This document shows, in pieces, positions 2,304 through 64,000 of a DNA stretch of 64,000 nucleotides (position 1 is its first letter; each line of letters starts with the position of its first letter). Under the pieces are notes generated by a model. That model made no database searches and was not told where the DNA came from. It worked only from the letters and a program-made list of their open reading frames with translations. The stretch spans positions 310,001 to 374,000 of the forward strand of contig JBLWGC010000043.1 of the NCBI GenBank assembly GCA_048772705.1. The letters run 5' to 3'. The position numbers and the translations under genes were made by a program. Source of the stretch: Leidyana gryllorum EB-2025a. Lineage: Eukaryota; Protista; Apicomplexa.

Positions 2304-4438
2304 ATGACTTTGTCAGCACACTATCTGTCGCAAGGCCTCTTCGAGGACCAGGATGATCAACTCGCCTACGAGGCTATCATCAAGCGACCATTACCGATCA
2401 CCTTTCGGATTATCGAGGGGACCGTCCACTCCACATGGGTCAAAGCCTTCATAAACGCAAACAGGTTCGTCCGCTTTTTATTATACCGCTCTCGCAGATC
2501 ACTCCTAATCTATCTGCTTCAGACATCTGTTGGAAGCCGATCCCGCCCATTATAGGTTCACCCGCCTCGACTGGTACAAGTTGTCCGAGGCTTATGAGCT
2601 CGACGTATCCCGCCAGACCCTCAGACAGACTCCACAGCTTCGACAGCTGTTCAATTTTCTGATCAAACAGTCAGAAAATGGAGTCATTGTGCGCCAGGAG
2701 GCCGTCAGCATGATACCCGCAACATTGCTCGCCAGAAGCATTACGTCGGATGACGCACGTTTGCTCGATTTGTGTGCTTCACCCGGAAGCAAAACTTCAC
2801 AATTGTTGGAGCTGCTCGCCAACAAAGCGCCTCCCGGAGGTGCCCGCGGTTTAGTCATTGCCAACGACCTCAACTCCACCCGTGCTCACATGTGAGTCCC
2901 ACTCCCTCGGTCGCTCCTACGAAATTGGCGTCTGCAGGCTGACCCATCATGTCAAGTATCTTAACAGCCCAGCCCTCCTGGTGACTCTGCACAACGCCGC
3001 TGTCTTCCCACGGCTGTTTCCTCCACATTCACCAAACTCTCATATCACCTTCGATGGCATACTGTGTGACGTAAGCGGCCGCTTAAATAAAACTTCCAAA
3101 ACGTATCGATACCCGATACCCCACAGGTGCCCTGTTCTGGTGATGGAACTGTTCGGAAATGTAAACAAGTGGCCGAGAATTGGACTCCCGCTACCGGCAG
3201 AGGACTCCATAAGTTGCAGATGCGGATTCTGAAAAGGGGATTGGCTCTGTGCAAAGTGGGAGGTGTGGTGGTATACTCTACTTGCAGTCTCAATCCTTTG
3301 GAGGATGAAGCGGTTGTTGCTGGTGTACTACGGGGCTGTGAAGGGGCCGCGATTCTCGATCATTCAGCCCCTTTCAAACTCGGATTGCCGTATCGTCAAG
3401 GCATTCTGACTTGGAAGGTCCCTTACAAGAATGAGATGTATGCCGAATACGATGAGGTGCCACCCATTCTTCGGAAGACAAAGATTTATCCCTCAATGTT
3501 CCCGCCCCCGAGCGAAGGAGAAGATGAACTGAAGAAGCAGGTTGTGTTCGGCTGTATGCGGTTCATGCCTCAGGACGGCAATACGGGAGGATTTTTTGTC
3601 GCAGTTTTCCAGAAGGTCGCCCAAATGCCCTGGGAACAGTTCGCCACTGCCGAGGAAGTTGAGGCCGAAGCTGAGGATGTACCAGAGATCTGCGAAACTC
3701 TGGCACAGCATCAGTTGCAGCAGAGCGATCTTTTCTGCGTAGGCCACGACGAACAACAGTGGCGACGCTTAGCATCCGAGGGATTTGAGCGATATGGGCT
3801 TCCAGTAGACGATCCCAGTCTCAAAAACCGGTTGTTTGGGAGACACACTGATAGTCCCCAATCCTCTGCATTGCCTCGCAAGGTAGGTATACTCTGGAGC
3901 GACCACACACACCACACACACTCATATACAGATCTGGTTGGTGTCTGAGGGAGTTCGGGAATGTCTGATGAGTCAAACAAAACGGGCGAGTCTGCGAGTG
4001 TGCTCGGCCGGCACTCAGCTCATGGAGTGTCGTAAAGGGGAGACGATCCGAACAATGTCAGGTGCCTTCAAGCTTTTGATGGAACATTTCAAGAACACGG
4101 ATGCCAATTATTCGTTCGAAAGAGGAACCTGTGTTCGGTTGGTGCCTCGGGAAGACAGTGAAGCACTTTTGAGTTATGGCAATCCCGACGAAGAGACGGA
4201 TTCTGACGTTCACCGGGCACCACGCGCCATATTGGAGCAACAGTTCCAAGAAGCGTCTGAGGGTCACTATATGCTTGTGACGCCTGCCGGTCAGTCGTAC
4301 ATTCCGGTGAGTCTCGAGGCCTTGTCCCCTTCCCATCGACCCAAACAGATCCCCATCTATCTGGGAAAGAGCTCCATTGAAGTCCTTCTCTCCACATGTG
4401 TGCGACGTAGTGTGCGTTGCCTCTTGTTGAAGGACTAG
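2304..4438 (+). CDS. NSUN2: NSUN2/Trm4-like tRNA m5C methyltransferase; introns ~2464-2522, 2892-2937, 3071-3126, ~3883-3930
   Basis: Motifs RQEAVSMIP, LDLCASPGSKT, ILCD|VPCSGDG and VVYSTCSLNPLEDEAVV (both catalytic Cys), plus GGFFVAVF. Joined across GT-AG introns. Confidence 0.93.
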
Positions 4439-8205: not shown

Positions 8206-9540
8206 ATGGGCAAGGAGAAGCAGCACATCAACCTGGTCGTCATCGGCCACGTCGATTCCGGTAAATCTACCACCACCGGACACCTGATCTACAAGCTGGG
8301 AGGTATCGACAAGCGTACCATTGAGAAGTTCGAGAAAGAGGCCAGCGACATGGGCAAGGGTTCGTTCAAGTACGCCTGGGTGCTCGACAAGCTCAAGGCC
8401 GAGCGCGAGCGTGGCATTACCATCGATATTGCTTTGTGGAAGTTCGAGACTCCGCGTTTCGAGTACACTGTCATTGACGCTCCCGGGCATCGTGACTTTA
8501 TCAAGAATATGATTACCGGTACCTCTCAAGCCGACGTGGCTCTGCTCGTTGTGCCTGCTGATATGGGTGGTTTCGAGGGTGCCTTCTCCAAGGAAGGACA
8601 GACTCGGGAACACGCCTTGCTGGCCTTCACTCTCGGTGTGAGACAGATGATTGTGGGCATCAACAAGATGGACGCCTGCGGATACAAACAAGACCGTTTC
8701 GATGAGATCCAGAAGGAAGTCGCGCAGTACCTCAAGAAGGTCGGATACAAACCCGACAACATCCCCTTCGTTGCCATCTCCGGTTTTGTCGGCGACAACA
8801 TGATTGAGAAGTCTACCAACATGGGCTGGTACAAGGGACTCACTCTCGTCGAAGCCCTTGACAAGATGGAAGTTCCGAAGCGGCCAGACGACAAGCCCCT
8901 CCGCCTTCCCCTTCAGGACGTCTACAAGATCGGCGGTATCGGAACTGTGCCTGTTGGCCGTGTCGAGACGGGTATCCTGAAGCCTAACATGACCGTCTGC
9001 TTCGCGCCCAACGGCGTCGTTACGGACGTCAAGTCGGTTGAGATGCACCACGAGCAGATCGATCAAGCCATCCCCGGTGACAATGTTGGATTCAATGTCA
9101 AGAACGTCTCCGTGAAGGACATCAAGAGAGGAAACGTGGCCTCGGACAACAAGAACGACCCCGCCAAACCCGCTGCCAGCTTCACCGCACAAGTCATCAT
9201 CCTCAACCATCCTGGTGAAATCAAGGCGGGCTACACCCCCGTGCTGGATTGCCACACCGCCCACATTGCCTGCAAGTTCCTGAAGCTTCAGAGCAAAATT
9301 GACAAGCGTACGAACAAAGTGAGTGATGATGCCCCCACGATGGTTAAGAATGGTGACGCTGCGATGATCCTCTTGGAGCCCACCAAGCCGATGTGTGTCG
9401 AGGCGTTCTCCGACTATCCTCCCCTCGGACGGTTCGCCGTGCGTGATATGCGCAATACTGTGGCAGTCGGCGTCATCAAAGCCGTCGACAAGAAGGAATA
9501 CGGTGCCGCTAAGGGCGCTGCCGCAGCTAAGAAGAAGTAA
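8206..9540 (+). CDS. EEF1A: Translation elongation factor 1-alpha (intronless)
   Basis: [20 protein letters not shown] and NKMD motifs. Apicomplexan-type [15 protein letters not shown]..IYKLGGID start. Confidence 0.99.
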
Positions 9541-28274: not shown

Positions 28275-31200
28275 ATGAAGCTCCAAGTTGTCTTACTGAG
28301 CGTATTTACGCTGTCTCGAGCCGATGGTGAGTACCCGCAGGCCTGCACTTCACATTAAGCTGTTGCTCAGAACATGATTTTTTGAGGCGCTCTATAGCTC
28401 TGGAGAGAGCTCTCGATGCTTACAAAACGAGTCACTCACAGGAGCCAGTACTTGAAGGGCAGACGACCCACAATATAGTCGTTACAGACTTTGAAAATGA
28501 CATGCTGATACCTAGCTTCTTGAAAGGTCCCGCCGCTCATGTGGTTCACGATGAGCAGGGAATGCCAGTCTGGTGGCCATTCGACCGAGGAGTTTGGGAT
28601 ATATTCAGAGCACCCCTCAGTCGGGTGATGCCACGTGTCACCATCTCTTCCGAGTCCAGTGATCCGGTACTAGCGATTCCTGGTGTCACAGCTGTGAACT
28701 TACGCAATTCCCGCGAACTGCAACTGAAACCACCTGCGCTCCTGAAGCCGGTGCCCTTCCTTGGAGCAGCACTGAACCACTTGTCGCAAGAGTTCGGGCA
28801 CATTCCACTTCCGACGTTGGAGTACGTTCCCGGATCTGCCCCAAATCTCTTCAACAAGCCCTGGCTGGGTAGACTGAACCCAGCCTTGCGCTATGCGGGC
28901 AGCCGACCGAAACCGCAAGGGCCCTTCGAGCCTGCAAATGCACCGCCAGTAATCGCTCCGTTGGCAACCGGTCCATTGGTAAGACTAGCACGGACATAGT
29001 CGACATATCCTATATCTTCACTCCAGACTGCACCACGTCCTGTCCAGGAAGTCGTATCTGATGAAGACCGTTACGACTACACGGTCATGGGAGGTGATGG
29101 GGACGAGAACAAGGTGGAGCAAGACTTGGAAGAAGCTTTGAGGAAGTTTGTCATCCAATTGGCTTCGACTGAGCTTCAAAGCGAGCTTGAGAAATTGCCG
29201 ATCCCCGAAGTGGACCCCAGTTTGTACCGGGTTGATTTTTCTGAGACTTTGGCTGACACTGATCAGATACCGCCTGGTTCAAATGTGCTGGCAGACCTGT
29301 TGATTGCTTCTGCTCGGACGCCGTACGATGAGTTGCCCAGTCCGGGCGATCCAATTGACTGGGCCCTCTGGCTTGACATAATCACTCGAGCAGATATCTT
29401 GGCACAAGAGGACTTGCACAGGATTCACTTGATGGCAGAGAAAGAGCTTTTGACTATCGAAGAAGAGGATGCCATTCGAGATCTCCTTTTCCAAGCTATA
29501 GGAGCGCTCCAAATTCGGCAGCAAGTTCGGGAAGTCGCAGCTCAGATGGGTTTCGAGTTAGAAGAGGAGCCGATCTTTGCTCGTGATGCTCTGGTTTCTG
29601 GCGAAGTGTCTGATCGCCCATCGCGGGAGGTTGCGGAAGTGGATCATGATAAGAACGCCTTCACCGATGTGAAGAGGAAGAAGAAAGGAAGTCCCGTCAC
29701 CATCACGGATCCTCAGACTGTCTACGAGCTCACTAAAAACTCTCGCGGAGAAGATCCTGAACATCTGGAAGACTTCGCGGATAAATACCACCTCAATTAC
29801 GACAAGCTGAAAAATCAGCTCGCAGCTCCCAAGAATCAGAGATACTCCGTCCAATCACTCCCGCCATCCATGCCCAATGCGGCTGATCTTAGCAGAGCTG
29901 TATCGAGTAGACATGCCGCAAATGGGGGTCCGGAGTCGAACTTAGGGTCTACTGGTGCGCTCCCAGATGTGTCAAATGTGAGTTTGGGAAGCCTGAACGA
30001 TTCTGCAAATGTGGCACCCAAAATCCCGTCTGCGATCGAAGCCGGAGGAAATCTACCTTCCTCTGCGGGTGCAGCCGAACAGGCTGTCGCTGGCTTAGCA
30101 CCAGCCGAAGTGAACGAGCGGAAGACAGTAGCGGAGCTCGCCCCCGCGGCCGTTGACGGAGGGAAGGCAGTGGCAGAGCTCGCGCCCGGAACGCTTGACG
30201 GAGGAAAGGCTGTGGCAGAGCTTGCGCCGGCGGAAGTTGACGGAGGCAAGGCTGTGGCGGAGCTCACCCCCACGGAGGCTGAAGGAGGGAAGGCAGCAGC
30301 GGAGCTCGCGCCAGGTGTCACAGAAGTCGGCAAGGCTGCTGCTGATCTCACTCCTGCGACGACTGAAGCCTTGGAATCAGCACCGGAAGCTCCCGCCGCT
30401 AATTCTGGGGCACAAAAGGCGGAATCAGACGGGGCTCCGGCCGCTGTTGGCATAGGCAAGGCAGCTTCCGACCTCGCACCTTCAACACTTACGGAGGACG
30501 GACAGAGTACGCCCCACGCAAGCGGCTCGGAGGAGAAAGCGGGAGAATCTGTCGCAGCTGCTGACGCACCGTTGGCGGACACTGCTTCCGAGGGCAAAGT
30601 GGGTACCGCCAAAGACTCAGAAAGCGCCGCCGAACCTTCCTCCAACCACAATGAAGAGGGTAGCCCAGCATCTGAAGCTGCTGCGCCTGTGAGTGGCCCC
30701 GCTGAGACCAGCACAACTACGGCAGCACCTCCTGGAATCGGTGGAGTGATTGGGAAAGTTGGATCGGTCTTGGATCCCTCGAAACTCGATAGCAGCCTCA
30801 AGAAGCTCACCCTCAGTGATACATTCTTCGACGTCCCGTCGGAGAATGGACGTCCACTCACCATAATGTACTTGGACGATGACGATTCGTCCAATACAGA
30901 GGCTGCTACGGATCCAGCTGTTGCGGCTGTTTCTTCCGCCGAATCCACCATACTGTCCACAAAGGACGCCGTAAAAGCTGGAGTTCCTGATGGAGTCTCA
31001 CTCGCAGAGGTTGTGCAGCAGCCATCTGACACAATGCGGATGATGGACGTTAACGAAGAAGAGTTTGAGGAAGCTGTGATTCCCGAGGAACCCATTCTTG
31101 CCAACAGTGTTTGGGTTCAAAAAGGTTTACAGAGTCCAGTGAACGCGAAAACTTCGCTTGTTGATGGAGTCTCCGAGGCAATCGACCGGGCTGCGGTCGC

Positions 31201-31699
31201 CATCGCTTCCTTGGAAGTGAAATCGGCGGAGAAAGTGCCTGTGAGTATCCGGCCCCTCGAAGAGGCGGAAGAGCTTCCACGGCAATCGGCTCAAGTCGTG
31301 AGCGGGCCATCCACCACGTTTATTGAGGATCTACTGTGGGAGCCGGAGACAGTTGTGGAAGGGGTGAAAGGTGTCACATTCGAGGATGATCTAAATGTTT
31401 TGCTAAGTTCTCGTTACCGAGATTATATCGCTGAAGGGTTGAACCCCAATGTGACTCTGACTGAGGCACAACGCCGCGTTATCAGTCAACTGGCTGATCA
31501 AGTGCGGGCAAACCGAAGTCAAAAACGTCCGACCACTGAAGACTGGGATATTCTTTTAGCCGCCCTGTTGGAGCAGGGTACGGTGGATGAGACCGACATA
31601 GTTTCGTTGAAAATGGTCGGAGGTCGCAAGTTGTTTGATTATTTGGTGATGACTGACTTGGCGGAAGGGCTCTTGAGCGCTGCCCTAAGTCTATCTTAA
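28275..31699 (+). CDS. Secreted protein A of a novel tandem family (signal exon; introns 28327-28370 and 28979-29026)
   Basis: MKLQVVLLSVFTLSRA signal peptide; shared domain IPGV..PNLFNKPWLGRLNPALRY; acidic and Ala-rich repeat region. Splices join in frame to the 870-aa ORF. Confidence 0.82.
30083..30360 (+). repeat. Coding 42-bp / 14-aa tandem repeat AVAELAPAEVDGGK, about 6-7 copies
   Basis: Visible in translation and DNA (GCGGAGCTCGC.CC..GACGGAGG.AAGGC). Confidence 0.9.
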
Positions 31700-31773
31700 T
31701 AACACAGCGTAGTGTTTGTATACTATATTTCCTATGCTTGCAAGCCTGAGAAGGCAGACATCGATTTCTGTAA

Positions 31774-33631
31774 ATGCGGAGTGTGTTGATCGGCTTTTTG
31801 TTAGGGAGCGGCAGGTAAGTGAGCTCACGCCCGTACGCAACAATATTGGATCAGTGGATACGAGGATGAGATATTGACGAACATCTCGGCCAATGCTGAC
31901 ACGCCTCTCGAGCGGCCCACTCAGGTGGAAGTTGGATTGAATGAGCGGATGGCTGTGGTCAATGACGCGGAAACCAACGCCGAGATCCAAGATGCAGAAA
32001 TTATGGAGGGGATGGCCCATATATATGCAGACGACGAAGCCCCGTATCACTATTATGTCAGTGTTGCCGATCCCAAATGGTCACTGCTCCCTGCTCCTTT
32101 GCTGGCAGGAGATTTGACCTGGTTGGACAAACCGTGGTTGGGAGGCCTGAACCCCCGCGTCTTCGTTGATCGTGCCCGGAGTCGCGTTCAGGCCATGTCC
32201 GGGCCAAACGGGGACTTGGTGACGATTCCCGGGGTCGCTCGGTTCACCCGAGTTCCACTTCGGGAAGACTTTGATCTGCCCAGCCCGGTTCTGGGCGTGC
32301 CATGGAGCCGCGATGAGTATCATAATCCGACGATGCCCACTGTCACTCTGCGAGCTCCCAGTTTCATTCATCCCATTCCTGATCACCCACCGGCTTTACT
32401 GAATCTCCCCCACCGCGGAGGTTTGAATCCAGCGCTCGCATATCGCCCCAAAACGGGTGAAGACGGGGTCCACGAGCAAGCTGAGGTGCCCAACCCAGCG
32501 CCCTTGTCAGAACCCAACCCCCCCTCTCTCGCAGCTGCCACCAGCGAGGACGCTGATCGCGAACATCAACAAGTTGGTGTCTCCAGTGTACCGGATACCG
32601 CTGAGCGCGCGAATGTGGGAGCTCCCATGGAGATCCCGGACGGAACAACGGCAATCAACGAGGGGAGCCGGGCAGAGGATAGCCCCGCCGAAGAGGACAG
32701 CCAGGAGGCCTCCAGTGCCTCTGTCTCCCCCTGGGCGCCGCAGACTTCCGACGAAGGATACGGCAAGAGTGCCCCGAGTCTACTCGAGTCGGATGATGAA
32801 GGAGACTCTGGCAGCCACAAGGCATCCATCAGCGAGTATGGGATGATGCCCGAGAGTCCCCCTCTGCCTCTCGGTGACGATGATGATGATGAGGCTGCCA
32901 AGGCTACTCGTGAGACCCATAACTCGCCTGCACCCGCTTTGCTCGGTCCAGATTTGGCGCTAATCGGGAGAAGGCTGAGTCATCGTCTCCCCATCTATCG
33001 CAGTCCTGTCGATGGGGACGTCCAGCTGGCTCGGCTAATTTTGGATGCAGAAGTTCAGGCGGGCAATACTTATTATCCAGTCCAGGGAGTCTCACTGATT
33101 CCGGCTACACTACGTGTGATCCGAGAGGCGCCCACCAGGCAACTGGGTGGTCTACGGTGGGGTGACTACTTGGAAAATTCACCAACAACTCGATGGGGAA
33201 AGTCGCTGGATTTCCAACGCGGTGAGATGCACACCCCCGCTCCTGAGCTTATGGGACGATTCCGGTGGTTAAGTAACGAGAGATCAGCTGACAGTGGTGT
33301 GGAAGAGTTGGAGCTGACTGATCTGCCCGTTGCGGTACTCGACAGGGGCGCGCAGGATCTAATCTGGGACGAGAGGCCCTCGGAAACTTCACCTTTCAAG
33401 GAGGAGGAGGACCCGGAGGCAGGAGTCACTCGCCAGAGCACCAAGTCACCATTCTTCGTGCATCGGCCATTAGCCCCGGGACAACGACGTCCCACCGATT
33501 CAAAGAGAGCTCCCCTAAAACGTGGAGATTTCGAACGTCAAAAGACGGAGCGGGCCGGCTCTCCGTTTGTTCCCGACTACGCTACACCGATACGCCTTGA
33601 CCCGGCAGGGGCTTTCCGTCCTGTGAAATGA
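31774..33631 (+). CDS. Secreted protein B of the novel tandem family (intron 31815-31854)
   Basis: MRSVLIGFLLGSGSG signal-like exon spliced in frame; domain WLDKPWLGGLNP..TIPGV..LLNLPHRGGLNPALAYRP. Confidence 0.82.
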
Positions 33632-33910
33632 GCTTTCGAATATACGAAGGATCTTTCTTTTTGTGCCATTACACTATCCAACTGTAAGCATACTTTATGC
33701 TGAAGCTTTAATGTTGTCATCGACGAGGAGGGGCAGCAGATTGGTTGCAGGAATTGAGGTTAGATCACCTCAACGGAGCTTTTCCTGCGCCTGACTCCTG
33801 ACTAGAGTAACTGATGGGGTGTGTGAAGGTGGACACGGTGTCTGAAGATCAAGGAAAAAGCCCCAAGAAGCAAACAATAAGCCGTGGGGATATTCACTGG
33901 GCCAAAGTAA

Positions 33911-36900
33911 ATGCGAAAGTTTACCTTCATCGCAGCTCTGGCCACCTTTGGCGGTGCCGAGCCTCAATCAAAGCGAGATGCGAATTTGCGTCCGTCACCC
34001 GTTCGCCAATTGACTGGAAATGAGGTCGAAGCCCAGAATCTCCTAACCAGGTGGAGGAGCGCGGTGAACACAGCCGTTGCAGCCAGGGCCACTCCCCCAC
34101 CTGAATCGCAAGTTGACCAACCTGATCCTCTGGAATTAGACACCCTCGATTTACCCACATCCTCCTTTGCGGCGTTGCCAGGTGCAGAGACCACAACAGT
34201 TCAAGGACAGACCACCGAGCATCGAAATCTCCAAACAGAGGCAGAAACGACAACTACCCCTCCCCCGGCTCCCGGAGCTCTTTCTCCCAAGAACGATGCT
34301 GCCGGGGCAGAGAAGCCTCAAACAAAGGACCAGGCAGCCGACGCCAAATCTGGCCAAGCTTCAGATGCGAAAGCTCCGGTAGCCAAAGCTCCAGTAGCGG
34401 AAGACAAGAAGGTCCCAAGTGCCTCCAGTCCCGCGTCTGGCGATGATGCTGCGGCGGCCAAAACCCCCGCTCAAGAGGAGGAAGCAGGAGTGAAGGACGG
34501 CAAGGCCCCGGCAGAGGAGGAGGAAGAAGGAGTGAAGGACAGTAAGGCCCCGGCAGAGGAGGAAGAAGAGGGCTACGGCGGCAAGGCCCCCGCTCAGGAA
34601 GAGGAGGAAGGACTGAAGGACGGCAAGGCCCCCGCCCAGGAGGAGGAGGAGGAGGGGTTAGGGGAGCAGTCGAAGGATGGTCAAGAGCTCGGTACACCGT
34701 CGACCTCCCTCCACCAACAGGGTCCCTACGACACTCCGTTGGGTGCATGGAGCTCAGACATTGGAATGAACACTCCTCTTACACAAATGTCGAGTATGAG
34801 TACCGATAGGGGACGACAGGAGCTGATGAGCCGTCTGAACCAGGCGAATCGCGGAGTATCCAATCAAGCGGTTCCGCCCCCACCTGTTACGCCCTGGAGT
34901 AACCCCAAACCGCCCGGGCAATGGTCGAGCGCCGGTCAATTGACTCGTACTCCTCTAACACAGTGGCTGGAGTCGCCCATCAACATTTGGAATCGGATTC
35001 CGTTGCCCGAAGTCTACGTCCAGGGCGGTGCGGCCAACAAACACTGTGGTCAAACCACTGCCACTAAGAGTTGGCTAAGCCGGCCCCAGTTGGGAATGTT
35101 CGATCCCGAGAAGTGGGTCCCGGACTGCCTCACTAAGATCTCTCCTTTCAATCCCTGGCCGTATCTCGATGCCACCATCGATGTACCAGGTGTGGGTCGA
35201 ATCAATCTGAAACCCAATCGTCAGCAAATCTCTGCTCGACTTCCCACCAATCTGGAACAAGCGTTCCCAGGACTCTCAGCCGTTGTTCCGCAAGAAATTA
35301 CTTTACACTATCCGGAATGGCTGCAACCCCTCCCCGGTCCCCCGCCTCCCATATTTGACCTCCCCCACAGAGGTGCATTCAATCCCGGTCTCGCCTACCG
35401 TCCGTCGTCCGCTAACCCCGCCTGGGCCCGAGGCGTCCAGGCCCCCTACGGCACTCAGGAGCACACAGCACAGGACAGTGAGGCCAGCAGAGAAGAAATG
35501 GCTATGCTCTACACGATGGGAGAGTTGGCCAAAAGAGTGCTCGCGTGCTACGAAACGCGCAGCAATTGCCGACCGGACACCGCCAGACGTCTGGCTGAGG
35601 TGTTGGCACGCAGCGGACGAGGAGGAAGCGCCACCCAGCTGTCTGGGTTCGATCTCGCCAGACTGGTCCTTGAAGGTCTCGAGATTATGCAGCAAGACCC
35701 CGATGCCTTCTCCGAAACCGACGTTGAACTCCCCAAGAGGGAGTATGCCGGCACCGTGGCCAAAGGTATCATAAAGTGCTTTGAAGGCAGAGGGTGTAAT
35801 CCCGGTCTGACCAGCTTCCTGGGAGGTCCCGGAAAGTGGGAGGATTTGACCGACGGTCAGCAGCAGGACATTCTGGAAAGGATCCAACAGACAGAAGACC
35901 CAGGATTGTTGGAAGAATTCCACCAGGTCGGCGCAAGTGGAGACGACTCGGTAACCGGCGCTCAGGAGAGCCAGCAGACACCTGCTGATCATCGCGAGGC
36001 GCAGAACGATCACGACAGCCCAAATCCGCCCCATGCGGCCGCGGGAGAGAGCGCACAAGAAAAAGGCGACAAGTCAGCACCCGCCGAGCAACATGAAGCC
36101 ACAGCCTCCCACGGTGATGCCTCGGCGGGCCCAGCTGTCGCCGAGAAGACTCCCGCGATCGACACTCCGGCCAGTGCCACAACCACAGCCAAGCCGGCAG
36201 GGGCTGGCGCCGCCGCTAAAGCCCCCGCACAGCCGGCCGAGACAGATCCCGTGTCAACGCCTCACACAGCCCAGGAAGCCACCACTACGCCTGAACCTGT
36301 GGAAACTACACCAGCCGGCGAAGGGGACAATCGGAACAACGAGGACACAACTAAAGCTCCGATGCCGGAAGCAGCTCGGATGCCGGCGGCCGCGACCACA
36401 ACTGCGGCTCCCAAAACTGCCGCTACCACAACTACGGCAGCACCGGCGGCAGCGGCACTGGCAGGGGCAGATGACATGGGTGACGAGGAACAATCTTTTA
36501 GCGGTGACTTTGGAGAACTGCAACGACGTCGATTACTGGCTGAGGACGCCGCGAGCGGTGAGGAGCAGCAGTTGGTGGCAGACGCACTGCCCGAAGTCGA
36601 TGTCAGTGCTCCTGCTGCGCCCGTTACCCTCGCTCGGCCTCTACAGGGCCTCCTGGGACGGTCATTCTTGGGGAGCTTCTTGAACAACAGGGGCCGGGGG
36701 TGGCAACAGCCCCTCCCTCCTCCAGAGTATACAGCTGACAAAGAGCTCGAAGGGATGGTATCGAGCCGAAACCCATTGGGAGTCATCGGACAGAAACCGT
36801 TCTTAGAGTCGAAACCGGCGGCAATCTTCACCTCTATGCCCAGTAGCGACATTGCAGCCGACTTGTTGGCATTCCAAAGCGATTTGGAGGGCCAAGAAGA

Positions 36901-37516
36901 GGCTCGGTTAGCAGCTGAGCTGGCTGAAGTGGAAGAGGCTCAAGTCGAAGCGCTGGCTGCAGCTGAGGAAATTGAGATGGCGGAGGAGGAGGAGTACGAG
37001 GAGCCCGTGTTGTCGGCTGAAGAAGCGGCTGAAGAGGTGCCGAGCGCTCTGATGAGTGAAGAGGAGGCTGAATTAAAAGAGTTATTATCAATGAACCGGA
37101 GAGACCGGTTGGTGAGTCTGTTGGCAAAATTAGCTCCCACTCTGGCGGAAACTGATTTGGCGACTGCCATACAACCCGCGGTCGAGTTCCTCGAGGACGA
37201 GTTACAGTTACCCCCCGCACCGCCAGCAGCACAGATGCCACAACCCCCCATGATGCCAACACCCTGGATGAATCGGCATCCGTATCCACCAATGTACCCC
37301 ATGATGGAGGGTCCCATCATAATTCCCTCTGCAGACATGATGGGACCAGTGCCACCCCAGATGATGGCCGGCAGCCGTCCCGACATGATGTTACCTCCAA
37401 GTAGACCAACAGCAGCCGATATGCGCCAGAACGAGCTCATGCAGAGACAACAAGAGTACATGATGAGAGCCGCCCCGCCGCCTTACTGGAGAGAAGGGGA
37501 ATGGATGAGGTTTTGA
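33911..37516 (+). CDS. Secreted protein C of the novel tandem family (1201 aa, intronless)
   Basis: MRKFTFIAALATFGGA signal; domain WLSRPQLGMFDP..DVPGV..IFDLPHRGAFNPGLAYRP; mucin-like Thr/Ala tracts, Glu repeats and a Met/Pro-rich tail. Confidence 0.88.
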   Translation: MRKFTFIAALATFGGAEPQSKRDANLRPSPVRQLTGNEVEAQNLLTRWRSAVNTAVAARATPPPESQVDQPDPLELDTLDLPTSSFAALPGAETTTVQGQTTEHRNLQTEAETTTTPPPAPGALSPKNDAAGAEKPQTKDQAADAKSGQASDAKAPVAKAPVAEDKKVPSASSPASGDDAAAAKTPAQEEEAGVKDGKAPAEEEEEGVKDSKAPAEEEEEGYGGKAPAQEEEEGLKDGKAPAQEEEEEGLGEQSKDGQELGTPSTSLHQQGPYDTPLGAWSSDIGMNTPLTQMSSMSTDRGRQELMSRLNQANRGVSNQAVPPPPVTPWSNPKPPGQWSSAGQLTRTPLTQWLESPINIWNRIPLPEVYVQGGAANKHCGQTTATKSWLSRPQLGMFDPEKWVPDCLTKISPFNPWPYLDATIDVPGVGRINLKPNRQQISARLPTNLEQAFPGLSAVVPQEITLHYPEWLQPLPGPPPPIFDLPHRGAFNPGLAYRPSSANPAWARGVQAPYGTQEHTAQDSEASREEMAMLYTMGELAKRVLACYETRSNCRPDTARRLAEVLARSGRGGSATQLSGFDLARLVLEGLEIMQQDPDAFSETDVELPKREYAGTVAKGIIKCFEGRGCNPGLTSFLGGPGKWEDLTDGQQQDILERIQQTEDPGLLEEFHQVGASGDDSVTGAQESQQTPADHREAQNDHDSPNPPHAAAGESAQEKGDKSAPAEQHEATASHGDASAGPAVAEKTPAIDTPASATTTAKPAGAGAAAKAPAQPAETDPVSTPHTAQEATTTPEPVETTPAGEGDNRNNEDTTKAPMPEAARMPAAATTTAAPKTAATTTTAAPAAAALAGADDMGDEEQSFSGDFGELQRRRLLAEDAASGEEQQLVADALPEVDVSAPAAPVTLARPLQGLLGRSFLGSFLNNRGRGWQQPLPPPEYTADKELEGMVSSRNPLGVIGQKPFLESKPAAIFTSMPSSDIAADLLAFQSDLEGQEEARLAAELAEVEEAQVEALAAAEEIEMAEEEEYEEPVLSAEEAAEEVPSALMSEEEAELKELLSMNRRDRLVSLLAKLAPTLAETDLATAIQPAVEFLEDELQLPPAPPAAQMPQPPMMPTPWMNRHPYPPMYPMMEGPIIIPSADMMGPVPPQMMAGSRPDMMLPPSRPTAADMRQNELMQRQQEYMMRAAPPPYWREGEWMRF
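34460..34680 (+). repeat. Coding repeat KAPA(E/Q)EEEEG(V/L)KDG, about 5 copies
   Basis: AAGGCCCC.GC..AGGAGGAGGA repeated in the DNA. Confidence 0.9.
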
Positions 37517-37554
37517 TTTTTACATTGAAAGATTTTTTATGGCAATTCGTCGCA

Positions 37555-38280
37555 ATGCGCAGACAATCACCATCACACAAATCATCGCTGTTTGAGAATG
37601 CCATCGCCAATATACCCCGAGGCGGGCCGACCTTGAGTACACGTAGTCGGTCCGTATTCGAGAGACTTGATCACATGCCCGATGCGGCACCTCCCAAGAG
37701 ACGAACTGTCCGTGCGAGTAGTCCATACGGACATCGAAGGGTAACCATGGATGTCAGCCGCCAACAGGATGGGTCTTCGTCTTCCTGGCGACACGATCGG
37801 TACCACGCCGCCGAAGGGCCCTCCGGCTCAACGCCGCCTGCAAACGGCATCCTGAGTACGGTGTTTGTACGGGGCCTAAATATGGACGTCAGTGAAGGTG
37901 CACTCCGAGGCTTATTCGAAGATGCGGGGTGCGAGGTTTCTATGGTTAAAATTGAAAGAGCTCCGTTGACAACCGCAGTGGTCGGCTTCGCTCGTCGAGA
38001 TCATGCTGCAAAGGCGGTGGAAAAAGTTCATGGACACCGCCTAATGGGAGCTCGCGTCCGTGTAATGGTGTGGAATCGGGATGACGGTGCTGCCATCAAA
38101 GCCCTGCAGGACCGTCGAGCCATGGATAGAGAAGAAGAGCTTCAGATGAAACAGGAGCTGATGCAAATGCAGCGCAATGACTCGTCGAGACCGTCAAACT
38201 CCGACTGGCCTGAAAGCCGAACAGGCGCAACAATGGCGCACCTGGCGCCCAAGCAATCTGTCTTCGAGCGCGTTTCTTAG
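37555..38280 (+). CDS. Single-RRM RNA-binding protein
   Basis: TVFVRGLNMDVSEGALRGLFE..AVVGFARRDHAAKAVEKVHGHRLMGARVRV. Confidence 0.85.
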   Translation: MRRQSPSHKSSLFENAIANIPRGGPTLSTRSRSVFERLDHMPDAAPPKRRTVRASSPYGHRRVTMDVSRQQDGSSSSWRHDRYHAAEGPSGSTPPANGILSTVFVRGLNMDVSEGALRGLFEDAGCEVSMVKIERAPLTTAVVGFARRDHAAKAVEKVHGHRLMGARVRVMVWNRDDGAAIKALQDRRAMDREEELQMKQELMQMQRNDSSRPSNSDWPESRTGATMAHLAPKQSVFERVS

Positions 38281-40760
38281 CTAAGCATCATCACAATGAG
38301 TACGGGTAGCAGCAACCGGATGAAATACAGCGAGCTTGCTCCCTCTGACAGTGCTACAACACCCTCCGATCCCATCATACGAGCCAGTGATGCTATGCGG
38401 CTGGACTTGGCCTTGCCTGTCAAGTTCTGCACGTGTGTGCCCGTCTCCATGATCAGTTGCTTGACTTCCTCGGCGGTCAGTTCGGGTTGATAGCTCCATA
38501 ATACAGCAGCCATCCCAGCAACAATGGGGGCGGAGAAGCTGGTTCCTTTCACCGAAGCAAGTTGGTTTTTCCCTGCGCGTTCGAATTGAGTGAGTCATGT
38601 CGTCGTAAAAGGTCAGTCATTTAGGAACACAATGCTTACCGTAAATTGTAATAATCCCACTGCCCGGAGCGAAGACGTCAACCGATTTGGATCCATAGTT
38701 GGAGAACCAGTCCAACTCGCCGTCTTCATTGGTCCCTCCCACGCTCACAATACTTGGCAGATCATAGCTTGCCGGAGTGAATGGGCCCAGCCAGTCACCA
38801 GTGTCGCTCAGACAGGCATTCGGGCCCGATTCACTGTCCAAGTCGCAGCCGTTATTGCCAGAGGAGCAGATAGACAAATGGCCCGCTGCCTGCAGGGCTG
38901 CATGCGCGTTGTACTCGGCTTCACTCGCTCCGAAACCGCCATACGAGTGATTGGATATCTTGATACCCTTGTCGAGCACATAGTTCAACGCCTGATGAGG
39001 GGGTTAACGGGACGCGACAAAGCGCTTCTGACTTACCCTCAAAACAGAGGTCATTGTGATCTTTTGCAGATCGGAATCATATATCTTTAGACACATAATC
39101 TTGCAATGCGGACATATGCCGCTGATATCTATCTTGTTGTTGGACTCTGCGGCCACCAGGCCAGAAGTAGAGCTCCCATGGATCTTCCCAACAACTTCGT
39201 CCGTGGGATCCGGTTGGTCGTTGCCAAAGTCCTGGGCGTTTGGTTTGTGACACAACAACGAGTTGACTTACATATCCGACACAATCACGGCTCACTCCAT
39301 CATCGGAAACGATGTCTGTCTCATCTCCCACAAAAGAGTCGGAGGTACAACCTGGTGTTTCTGTGTTCCTCCAAAATTGATTGACCAGATCTGAGTTTCG
39401 AGAGCACCCTGAATCCAATATAGCAACAGTCATTCCATAGTGTACATTCGCCAAATTGGCAAATTCCAATGCTACTTGTGCTGTTTGAAAGAGAAAGGGC
39501 GAGAAATGTTTTGATAGTTATGATTGCGGTCGACTCACAAAGCGATGAATTAGCGGCAGAAGAGTTCAGGAACTGGTCTCTCAGCATTGAACTCCATCCG
39601 TCGATGACCTGTGCTCCGTAGGGTTGCTCTTGGCTCGGGCCGCGTAGGTACCACTGATTCGAGAAATATCTATCATTGGGGACCACGAGTGTGTATTGAA
39701 TGGGAGATTCCGTTGACTGTACTTCTTTAAATAGCCCAAGAAACTTCTTTTCCACATTGTCCACTGTCGTCTGGAAAGACGATACCTTCTCTGTGCGTGC
39801 TGACGGCGATACAGTCACGTTGCTTTCCCGCATTACACGGATGGACTTGAGTGGAGTGTTGCTCGTGGGAGGTTCTATTTGTCCCAAGGCTTCCTTGGTT
39901 CGATCTGCTTCTGGTTTGAAAGCCCCACATGGCAATAAATTGGCCAAGTTTAGGAGATCCACTCCCAATAGGGGATTATGGATCAGCTTCATACCGAGTC
40001 CATGCAACGCTTCGGTCTCTGTCACGATCGACAAGGCTTGATGGCTCATCCACTGGGCTTCGTTCTGGAGGTTTTTGTCTCCATCAGCGGCTACTCGCGT
40101 CAACGTTGCGTTTCTTGAGCTCTGTTTGGCCTCAAGGCGTGCCTCCATGCGTGTGAGCCACGAGTCTTTGACTTCGACTTGGGCATGTTCCTTTACCAGA
40201 GCCAATGCCTCCCTCCAGCTGCCTCTCTTCTCGAGAGTCAGGAACTCGCTGACGTGATCAGTTCCGATCAGCTGCAGAGCTGCCAGGAGGTGCAGTGCGG
40301 ATAAAATCTCGTCTTCTCGTTGCGCGGGAGACGTGTCGCCCAGTCGTCTACGCACTGCCGCCGTTTTGTCGAGGAGAATGGGTTTGAGAGATGGCACTCC
40401 CACGATGGCTTGAGCGTCGTTCAAATGCTTATCGAAGACAGTCTTGAAGGCGGAGGGATCCGGGTATGAGGTATTGGCACCAGACTTTTGAGTGAGACTC
40501 GCAAAACCAGCAGATTTAGTATCAACGGTCTTGAGGCTCGCCCGTTGCATCTCCTTGAGCTGCTCCTCAATGTATTCGGCCAAGTCAAAGTCCTTGTGTT
40601 CTGAACATGCGGAGTCAAACTTGATGATGATGTGGTCATATAAGAGCTCAGAGGCTACCCGATTGGCCTGCGCTTCTTGAAGGTCAAGGGCAAGTACTTC
40701 TACGACATCGGTCTCCTCTGCCAACACACTGGTCAATGCTAGCAACCACCACTTCTTCAT
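38277..40760 (-). CDS. Subtilisin-like serine protease (S8A) 1 with long prodomain and C-terminal hydrophobic (GPI/TM-like) tail; four introns
   Basis: Signal MKKWWLLALTSVLA; PNDRYFSNQWYL; triad ILDSG / IHGSSTSG / GTSFSAP; oxyanion SSGNNG; tail GASSLYFIRLLLPVLIVMMLS. Confidence 0.92.
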
Positions 40761-47781: not shown

Positions 47782-49746
47782 TCAACATGGCACATCGACG
47801 ATAGTGCGAGAAGTGTGTATTTCAGCTTCTTCTTCAGTTGTTCCCCACTCGTACTGAGTACCCAACGCCACATCCAACTGGACAGCGCTGGAGTTTTCGG
47901 GTGGATCAACGAAGATGGGGAATCTCATTTCCTCGCCCGGCCGCAAGACGAAACGTCTTCCGGTGGTGTGCAAACCGGTCGTAGAGGACGTGGCAGCCGC
48001 CAGAGCGCCTTTCACTGCTCCCAAACTGTCCAGTCGGCCTGATGAAGATATCTTGGACGCATAAGCGCTGACGACTTGCACAGACGACAGGATGAGCGAT
48101 TTTCGTTGGGTGACAGTCAGATTGGGGTTGGCTTGTAACATAAGAGCGATGGTGCCCGCGACCATCGGAGTCGCCATGGAGGTTCCGCCTCGCCATTGGT
48201 AGTTGGTGTTTCCGACATTGTATATATAATCTCCAGGAGCGGCCAAGTGCACACACTTCGTGCCGAAGTTAGTATAGTCGATCAGCGACGTGTTTTGACA
48301 GGTGGCAGAAACTGTCAAAGTATTATTGAGATCCCAGCACGCCGGATAGTTTGGCGTGGCATTCATGTCGGTTCCTGCATTTCCTGCAGCGGTCACCCAC
48401 GATACGCCTTTGGCACCCGCTGCTTTCAGAGCGTTGAACATTGTGGTATAATTGGACGTGGCTCCACCCCAACTGGCGCTCATGACTTTGACGCCAGTGG
48501 AGACACCGTAGTCAATACATTTGACAGCATCACTGAACAGACCGGATCCGGAGTTCATGAACTTGCAGGTGACCAAGCTGGGCCCCCAGGACATACCCGC
48601 GACACCGATGGAATTGTTGGTCACTGCCCCCACTGTTCCCAGGCAGAAGGAGCCGTGCCCATCGGTGTCGGTGATATTGCCGTCAATGACACCACTGGCC
48701 ACACGGATTCCGTTGACATCGTCTTTATAGCCGTTGTCTGTGGAGGCACGAAGATGAGCATTTGTTGTGATACAGTGCGTTTAGAAATGAGAAGGTGTTG
48801 AGAACATACTGTCATCGTCGACTCCGGCTGCGCCATTGGCTTCGGCGGAATTGACAAAGATGTTTGCTTGAAGGTCCGGATGGGACACGTTGGTGCCAGT
48901 GTCTATGACCATCACCTTGGGGGACTTCATATTGGCACCTGTGACATATCCCCAGGCTTGATTGACTTTGGTGTCTTTAATGTACCATTGGCGGCTGAGC
49001 CACTGGTCGTTGGGTGTAACAGCAGCGTCAGCGAAGGCTTGGAGTTCATGTTGGAAGGCTTGGACGTGTTGGGCGGGATCGATACTGCCGCGATGGACAA
49101 AGTCGTCGAGGTCGATTCCGTGAATATGGGGATGGCAGACGAATTGTTTGAGTAGATCCAAGATTTTACCACTTTCCTGGCCGAAGGTGTCAGCGAAGTG
49201 GACAACACCAGTCTTGATGTTGTCGCTAAGGAAGATGCTTTTGACCAATCCGTGGCAGGGCATTTTGGGTAGACATTGGAACTGTCTGGCTTTAGAAGAG
49301 AGGGGTTGTAACCAATGGGCTTTGGGGTCTACGAGATTCTCGCAGAATTTGGCCCAACGCTGCATTTGACTGCCGTCTTTGAACTTGTTGGGGTCCCAGT
49401 GAAAGAGGAGGTTGAGAGGGCCCTTCTTGGCGTGGGTCAACTCCAAGGCTTTGTGCAGGAAGGTTACAAACTCTGCGGTCCGCATGATTGTGTGTGTAAC
49501 ACTTTGCCCCTCTACAGGGGTTTGGTGCTCACAGGTGGCGCTGGCGCCCCGGAGAAGGCCGGTGCTACTGACTTTGCCATCTTCCAGCCACACTTCCACG
49601 GGTTCATCATCTCGATTATGGACTTTTAGGTCAACTCGAGGCGAGCGCCCGAGGTCATGTTCAACTTGCTCGAAAGACGTGTGCAGTTTAGGTTTGGCAG
49701 GTCCAGCCAAGACCGTGGTGCACAGGAAGATCAACTTGGTCCACAT
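47782..49746 (-). CDS. Subtilisin-like serine protease (S8A) 3; one intron
   Basis: Signal peptide; PNDQWLSRQWYI; VIDTG; GVDDD|NNGYKDDVNG (SUB1-like Ca loop); HGSFCLG; AAGN; GTSMATP. Confidence 0.95.
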
Positions 49747-62144: not shown

Positions 62145-64000
62145 TCAACCACTGCAGGCGTGACAAATCTCGTCATCCGGATTATACTGATAACCAGGCT
62201 TCTTCCTTGGACAAGCGAAAGGCACTTCTGCTGAGTTCTCCTTGTTATCGCCAACTGCTGTGGTGGCGTGTGATGGAGGGGCTTCGGCGGGGACAGTGGG
62301 TCTATCCGTCACCTTAGCCTGCTGTACCGTAGCCTTGTCCACCGTGAATTTGATGGCGTCGACTGCTGCTTGCGTTCGCAAGTAGTACATTCCAGTCTTG
62401 AGACCTGCGCGCCATCCGTAGAAGTGCATGGAGGAAAGTTTAGCAAACGTGGGGTTCAGAACGTAAAGATTCAAAGATTGGCTTTGATCAATGAATGGAC
62501 CACGCGCGACCGCGAGATCAATCAGAGTCCGTTGCTTGATCTCCCACACAGTCTTGTAGATCTGCTTCATGTCATCACCAATCTCAACTATGTTCTGAAT
62601 ACTGCCATTATTAGCAATCAGTCGTTGCTTCATTGCCTCATCCCACAGTCCACGTTTGATCAGGTCACGGAGGAGATGTGGATTCACAACAAAGAACTCG
62701 CCGCTAAGAACCCTTCTCGCATAAATGTTTGATGTATAAGGCTCGAACGATTCGCAATTGCCCAGAATCTGAGAAGTACTGGCAGTGGGCATCGGCGCTA
62801 GCAAGAGACTATTCCTCATGCCGTGTTCCTTGATTTGTTCTCTCAACGTGGCCCAATCCCACATTCCACTGAGCGCAATAGGAGCGAACTCAGATGGTAA
62901 TGTGCCCTTTTCGAGTGCCTCATCGTACGAGCTGCCAGGATTCAGCCGTTCGTATTTCTGACGTCGTTCCTGATTCCACATGTCGAATTGGAGAATTCCT
63001 TCGCTTGCGGGACTTCCTTTGAACGTACTGTAGGGACCTTCCTCCTTCGCCAGCTCCATGCTCATCTCGCAAGCGGCAAAGTATATTGTCTCAAATATCT
63101 TCTTGTTCAGCTCCATTGCCTTCTCACTCTCATATGGGAGCCTCATCAACATCAAAGTATCAGCAAATCCTTGTACGCCCAAACCAATTGGACGGTTTCT
63201 CATGTTGGAACGATAGGTCTCGGGAACAGGATAGTGGTTCCGATCGATCACGCGGTTGAGATTTCGAGTCACTACTTTGGCGACTTGGTAGAGGCGGTCG
63301 TAATCAAATTCTATATTGTCTTGCTTATCCGCCAAGTCGTTTAAGCTCTCCTCGACCTTAACGAACTTCGGCAAAGCGATACTAGCTAAGTTGCATACTG
63401 CAATTTCGTCCGGGCTGGTGTACTCCACAATCTCGGTACACAGGTTGCTGCACTGTATTGTGCCCAAATTCTTCTGATTGGATTTCCGATTGGCGCTGTC
63501 TTTATATACCAGGAAAGGATTTCCGGTCTCTATCTGGCTCTGTAGTATAGCGAACCACAGCTGTTGTGCTTGTACAGTCCTCACTCCACGTCCTTCCCTC
63601 TCATATCTCGTGTAAAGCTCATTAAATTCTTCTCCGTGTGCTTCCGGAAGACCAGGACACAAGTGAGGACACATCAGCGTCCATTTGTCATTCGTCTGTA
63701 CCCTCTCCATGAATAAATCACAGACCCACAAAGCGTAGAATAGATCCCGGGCTCGCGTTTCTTCTTTGCCATGATTCTTTCTCATGTCCACGAACTCGAA
63801 GACGTCCGCATGCCAAGGCTCCAAGTAGATAGCGAAAGAGCCTTTGCGTTTCCCTCCTCCTTGATCAACATAGCGAGCGGTATCATTGAAGACCTTGAGC
63901 ATGGGTACGATACCATTGGAGCGGCCGTTGGTTCCAGCAATGTAAGTACCTGTAGCCCTGATCTTATGGATGGCGAGCCCAATCCCTCCTGCCGACTTGC
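62145..64000 (-). CDS. RRM1: Ribonucleotide reductase class Ia large subunit, 5' part off the window
   Basis: [48 protein letters not shown] and C-terminal CxxC (CHAC). Confidence 0.99.

Follow-up and report, generated by a model that had tools for sequence, protein, structure and literature searches.

Three tandem genes for secretory proteins of the gregarine Leidyana gryllorum share a module seen so far only in eugregarines

The analysis of a 64,000-nt stretch of the Leidyana gryllorum EB-2025a genome (contig JBLWGC010000043.1, positions 310,001 to 374,000; this whole stretch is called the window, and coordinates are given in its numbering) reveals three adjacent genes on the plus strand, gene A (28275-31699), gene B (31774-33631) and gene C (33911-37516), which have one ordered block of about 110 residues in common. 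Judged by sequence comparison, this block, hereafter the module, is a genuine homologous unit that is new to the databases searched. The three genes form a tandem cluster of paralogues for soluble secretory proteins, and the module family to which they belong is real, secretory and so far confined to eugregarines. The gene models were read from the DNA letters, their introns being predicted, and all searches were run with single-exon queries, exon by exon.

The module lies at 28571-28894 in gene A, 32120-32449 in gene B and 35072-35404 in gene C (plus strand throughout). BLASTP between the blocks gave E values of 6e-12 (B/C), 3e-6 (A/B) and 2e-4 (A/C), and the Smith-Waterman scores of 87, 91 and 152 stood 10-20 standard deviations (SD) above those of composition-preserving shuffles (mean 32-33, SD ~6), with none of 2000 shuffles equalling the observed score. 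Since the scores far exceed those of sequences made of the same residues, Pro-rich composition is not the cause of the match. An earlier note on this DNA, made from the letters alone, had described three same-strand neighbours that carry one common ordered block and are otherwise unalignable; the first part holds up under BLASTP and is clearly better than the Pro-rich shuffled controls, and the second agrees with an all-against-all BLASTP of the exon translations, which returned no second common segment. The same note had placed a Pro/Gly/Asn motif at both ends of the block in B and C and had read this as suggesting an internal duplication. In the six-frame translation of the window, the pattern P..G.[LFMIVW][ND]P has exactly five matches, all at block ends, at both ends in B and C and at the distal end only in A, whose N-terminal motif is degenerate and whose C-terminal motif is full. 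Internal duplication is too strong a term for this: profile-profile comparison of the N-terminal and C-terminal halves found only a 15-residue motif in common (probability 91%), so that B and C contain a short repeated motif and not a duplicated half-domain.

An exhaustive profile search of 1.84 billion representative proteins returned four matches, two of which are true relatives: P0001 from Gregarina sp. Poly1 (171 aa) and P0003 from Blabericola migrator (167 aa), both held in EukProt without name or annotation. The other two, P0002 and P0004, are repeat proteins that matched one short hydrophobic stretch many times and were rejected. P0001 and P0003 align across the whole block at 27-35% identity to the window copies. 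Like A, B and C, they have a signal-like leader, the same ordered module, the I/V-P-G-V turn and the terminal motif (P-W-L-G-x-[LF]-N-P..Y). Unlike them, they are ~150-aa secreted proteins in which the module makes up the whole mature part, with no acidic tail, no Cys after the leader and an end 4-8 residues past the motif; they also lack the second motif copy of B and C. Thirteen columns of the five-row alignment of A, B, C, P0001 and P0003 are invariant, among them P-G-V and G..N-P..Y, and the hallmarks of the alignment are an invariant central I/V-P-G-V turn and a terminal P-[WH]-[LR]-G-x-[LF]-N-P-x-L-x-Y. All five proteins combine a signal peptide (recognised by eye), both hallmarks and a Cys-free module core. 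Copies A, B and C match the five-row profile at E 1e-42 to 1e-52, and three-row and five-row profile searches of all contigs found no further copy in the genome.

Both relatives come from transcriptomes for which trophozoites of cockroach gregarines had been picked by hand (PMC8051059). The k-mer coverage of the P0001 contig is 7 versus 377 for RNR in the same assembly; the transcript is thus present in trophozoites and not abundant. The library that was profile-searched includes Gregarina niphandrodes proteins, and none of them matched at a library-wide E<=0.001, a threshold that a weaker relative could escape. No Pfam-A family matched the four exon products at E<=0.1 or any of the five module sequences at E<=10, and the best match of a sequence-profile search of the PDB had an E value of 0.17. 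Neither the C module nor P0001 drew a usable match from a feature search of the ESM Atlas, and the two most conserved peptide patterns had 178 pattern matches in JGI metagenomes, none of them confirmed. A word-index protein search found no match for residues 60-200 of B and returned only P0001 for the five-row alignment; exact look-ups of gene C, EF-1alpha, P0001 and P0003 found no record. The block, which had been reported as unrecognised, is therefore without a described counterpart in Pfam or the PDB profiles, and the suggestion that it belongs to a lineage-restricted family fits its occurrence, among the 1.84 billion proteins, only in this genome and two other eugregarines.

In a maximum-likelihood tree built from the five modules, only one split is supported (97/98), and it separates B and C from A, P0001 and P0003. 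The wording of the motif follows the same line, being P-W-L-G in A and the small proteins and P-H-R-G followed by A-Y-R-P in B and C. Because of the split and the wording, gene A may correspond to the small proteins, and B and C may be derived sisters that carry a second copy of the motif. Identity between any two modules is only about 24-35%, which points either to an old triplication or to fast evolution of the genes.

The exon structure of the cluster was read against the RNR large-subunit gene of the window (62145-63902, minus strand), whose product is 70% identical to that of Gregarina sp. Poly, 68-69% to those of Protomagalhaensia and Polyplicarium and 65% to that of G. niphandrodes. These values place the genome among the gregarines and set it apart from G. 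niphandrodes and from every species in the protein collections. In this gene, comparison with homologous Gregarina RNR proteins delimits two GT..AG introns of 43 and 37 nt (2770-2806 for the 37-nt and 3122-3164 for the 43-nt intron in RNR-locus numbering, minus strand), which serve as the verified splice-site reference for the genome. Introns of G. niphandrodes are reported to belong to the same short class, with a mode of 37 nt (PMC9250747). Gene A opens with a 17-codon exon (28275-28326) that encodes a putative signal peptide with an 11-residue hydrophobic core and ends in phase 1; a putative 44-nt intron of the RNR class (28327-28370, GTGAGT..CAG) follows, and the frame runs on from exon 1 into the module-bearing exon 2 (28371-28978). 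Gene B begins 74 nt past the stop of A with a 13-codon exon for a putative signal peptide (31774-31814, phase 2 end), after which comes a putative 40-nt intron (31815-31854, GTAAGT..CAG) that also keeps the frame. The introns that the earlier note had proposed directly after the signal exons of A and B thus agree, on the strength of the DNA letters, with the verified RNR introns in size and GT..AG ends.

Beyond the module, the two long open reading frames (ORFs) of gene A are separated by one in-frame stop, the TAG at 28997-28999, which lies inside a 48-nt stretch (28979-29026). This putative second intron has its donor, GTAAGA, exactly between two codons; a pyrimidine tract and a CAG end follow, its length is divisible by three, and its excision keeps the frame into an 870-aa ORF. 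Its likeness to the verified introns, and the long acidic tails found downstream of the module in B and C as well, lead us to favour its removal, which is the probable arrangement of the gene. Exon 3 (29027-31699) would then encode an acidic tail of 890 aa with a net charge of -84, no Cys and no membrane segment. With the 48 nt retained, gene A would encode a 222-aa protein with little beyond the module, the architecture of the cockroach-gregarine homologues. It is also conceivable, if rather unlikely, that gene A simply stops at this TAG as a 222-aa protein and that the ORF at 29087-31699 forms a gene of its own, one that lacks a signal peptide. The clustering of copy A with the small proteins by tree and motif wording would suit such a short gene, and an intergenic gap of 88 nt is possible where one of 74 nt occurs; the splice signals, the in-frame junction, a size that matches the verified introns and the long acidic tails that follow the module in B and C speak against it. 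The tail of gene A contains a 42-nt tandem repeat (30120-30309, 4.5 copies) with a 14-aa Ala/Glu/Pro unit. An antisense ORF of 422 aa (29836-31104, minus strand) lies within the same Ala/Glu-rich tail and is most likely a by-product of biased composition and not a gene.

The second exon of gene B (31855-33631) holds the module and a 393-aa acidic tail with a net charge of -28 and no Cys. Gene C is a single exon of 1201 codons that opens with a hydrophobic leader, and its product comprises a signal peptide, an acidic Thr/Pro-rich leader of 370 aa, the module, a helical segment, an acidic Thr-rich tail and a Met/Pro-rich end. A 42-nt tandem repeat (34464-34654, 4.6 copies) with a Lys-Ala-Pro-Ala-Glu-rich unit lies in the 370-aa leader. 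The helical segment (35468-35950), which has four Cys, was modelled from a single sequence by AlphaFold2 (AF2) with a predicted local distance difference test score (pLDDT) of 62.7 and a predicted template modelling score (pTM) of 0.55, and we are moderately confident that it forms a helical bundle; a Foldseek search of this model against the PDB found nothing at E<=0.001. A PEXEL-like R-x-L-x-E word occurs at residues 874-878 of gene C (36530-36544), far from the signal peptide.

The physical character of the module sets it apart from what surrounds it. It has a net charge of 0 to +4, 14-19% Pro, 8-11% aromatic residues and no Cys, whereas the parts that flank it have net charges of -23 to -84. 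In a charge-hydropathy plot the module falls on the folded side and the B tail, the C tail and the C leader on the disordered side, the A tail being just on the folded side. Cys is absent from A and B and occurs six times in the 1201 residues of C, and Tyr makes up 1.3-2.4% of the three proteins. Runs of 3-4 Ser or Thr residues number eight in C, two in A and none in B. A search for a membrane span in A, B and C found none, the highest 19-residue Kyte-Doolittle mean of 1.23 being below what a span requires. The secretory appearance that had been noticed from the sequence agrees with hydrophobic leader cores of 8-11 residues, judged by eye, in all three proteins, and such cores are present in both foreign homologues as well. 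The AF2 model of P0001, built from the five-row alignment, has a pLDDT of 42, with a hairpin at the P-G-V turn and values of 68-76 for the terminal motif alone. Complex prediction for the B module with the C module, run without controls, gave an ipSAE of 0.00 and so carries no weight for or against contact between the two.

These properties allow tentative proposals for what the module does. The one we put forward, while giving it somewhat less than an even chance, is that it acts as an extracellular docking or assembly unit that ties acidic tails to a shared partner in a coat or secreted matrix. In this species the tails that it would tether are long and strongly acidic, rich in Thr and in part repeat-bearing; the common partner might be the module itself, another coat protein or a glycan, and the two motif copies would make B and C bivalent. 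Several observations are consistent with such docking: homology above the composition controls, a motif exclusive to the blocks, three adjacent copies that are the only ones in the genome, two signal-bearing relatives of trophozoite origin, the split of B and C from A and the small proteins, a module on the folded side next to tails of net charge -28 to -84 that in B and C lie on the disordered side, no stretch of membrane grade, no Cys in A or B and short Thr runs in C. Acidic or mucin-like secreted proteins of other Apicomplexa, such as the mucin-type glycoproteins of Cryptosporidium, offer a likeness in their signal peptide, lack of an anchor, acidic repeats, short Thr runs, tandem genes and rapid divergence, but they have no sequence relation to A, B and C, in which the Thr runs are just 3-4 residues long. 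Weighing against the docking proposal are the coverage of the P0001 contig, which is low beside that of RNR for a major trophozoite coat component, the signal peptides, which were called by eye and with no predictor, and the AF2 model, because of whose low overall pLDDT and better-scoring terminal motif the block may not fold on its own. This last point leads to a rival that concerns structure and not role, namely that the block has no folded domain and consists of short linear motifs in a fixed order, for sorting, processing or modification, in disordered secreted proteins. It would account for the poor model, for invariant positions that are nearly all P, G, N, W or Y and for the recurrence of the terminal motif as a separate 15-residue unit. 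Against this are an order and spacing kept over ~110 residues in five proteins at ~30% identity, a hydrophobic and aromatic composition that the charge-hydropathy plot places on the folded side, and the shallowness of a five-row alignment, which alone could cause a poor model. Moreover, the small homologues contain nothing but the module and so have no cargo to sort or process, and we regard a motif array as doubtful.

Where the proteins are deployed can be read in other ways. The earlier note had envisaged co-assembling structural proteins of a cyst wall, surface coat or secreted matrix that polymerise via the module; in the cyst-wall version they would be precursors of the gametocyst or oocyst wall, and the subtilases encoded nearby could perhaps process them. 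A tandem cluster of secreted proteins suits this idea, and it gains mild help from the subtilase (Peptidase_S8) genes 1-12 kb downstream on the other strand, since the wall precursors GAM56 and GAM82 of Eimeria are cut by subtilisins, and from the low coverage of the homologue in trophozoites, which would fit a peak in another stage. As secreted structural candidates, A, B and C also resemble COWP/OWP and GAM56/GAM82, whose wall-forming features they nevertheless lack: Cys-rich repeat arrays of the COWP/OWP kind are absent (no Cys in A, B or the mature parts of P0001 and P0003, few in C), as are Tyr-rich regions of the GAM56/GAM82 kind, which serve dityrosine cross-links, and there is no profile match. 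Both foreign homologues come from picked-trophozoite samples, and the family is therefore not confined to cyst stages, which leaves wall precursors improbable. The proteins might instead be host-interface effectors that secretory organelles store and then discharge, either into the gut lumen or where the parasite attaches, with a module that binds a host ligand. This role would suit proteins that have a signal peptide and no anchor, are acidic and of low complexity, and diverge fast (pairs ~30% identical), the usual traits of dense-granule and other secreted antigens in the Apicomplexa, and the family is so far confined to gut-dwelling eugregarines. Pfam, however, identified no known adhesive domain, and the TSR, vWA, EGF or Apple domains, membrane span and cytoplasmic tail of TRAP/MIC adhesins were not found, there being no Pfam domain and no span. 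The hosts of the three gregarines differ, yet the motif is strictly kept, so a parasite-side partner fits better, and we consider effectors unlikely, if a little less so than wall precursors. Our most speculative suggestion, to which we attach only a slim chance, is that the module is a new Cys-free, Pro/aromatic-rich extracellular assembly unit of eugregarines that builds coat, mucus or cyst wall, with retention or removal of the 48-nt intron in gene A switching between a short form with little beyond the module, the ancestral architecture found in the cockroach gregarines, and a long, acidic-tailed one.

To our knowledge, no large branch of the Apicomplexa is less well known than the gregarines, and the molecules of their coat, mucus and cyst wall are almost unstudied. 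Although the module is new to the databases searched, it belongs to a familiar kind, the secreted orphan family restricted to one parasite lineage; such families are common in parasites, and the present value of this one is therefore descriptive. It nonetheless provides a cleanly defined secretory module with five members, a diagnostic motif and a small, module-only member that is easily expressed, which gives a concrete handle for localisation and binding work and a marker family for eugregarine genomes.

The setting of the cluster is that of a very compact genome, as the 74-nt gap between A and B illustrates; the assembly comprises 15.5 Mb in 237 contigs, with a local G+C content of ~52-58%. 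In the comparison of gene order around RNR with G. niphandrodes, RNR alone matches and the flanking genes differ. An RRM-protein ORF (37501-38280, RRM_1 E 1e-7) follows gene C and, counted from its first ATG, shares the final 16 nt of that gene (37501-37516) in another frame; the true start of the RRM protein is probably a later ATG. The subtilase genes lie at 38277-38988 and 47782-48702 on the minus strand, convergent with the cluster, and the first of them is split over at least two ORFs and is therefore also intron-containing. EF-1alpha, at 8206-9540 of the window, is one unbroken ORF of 444 codons.

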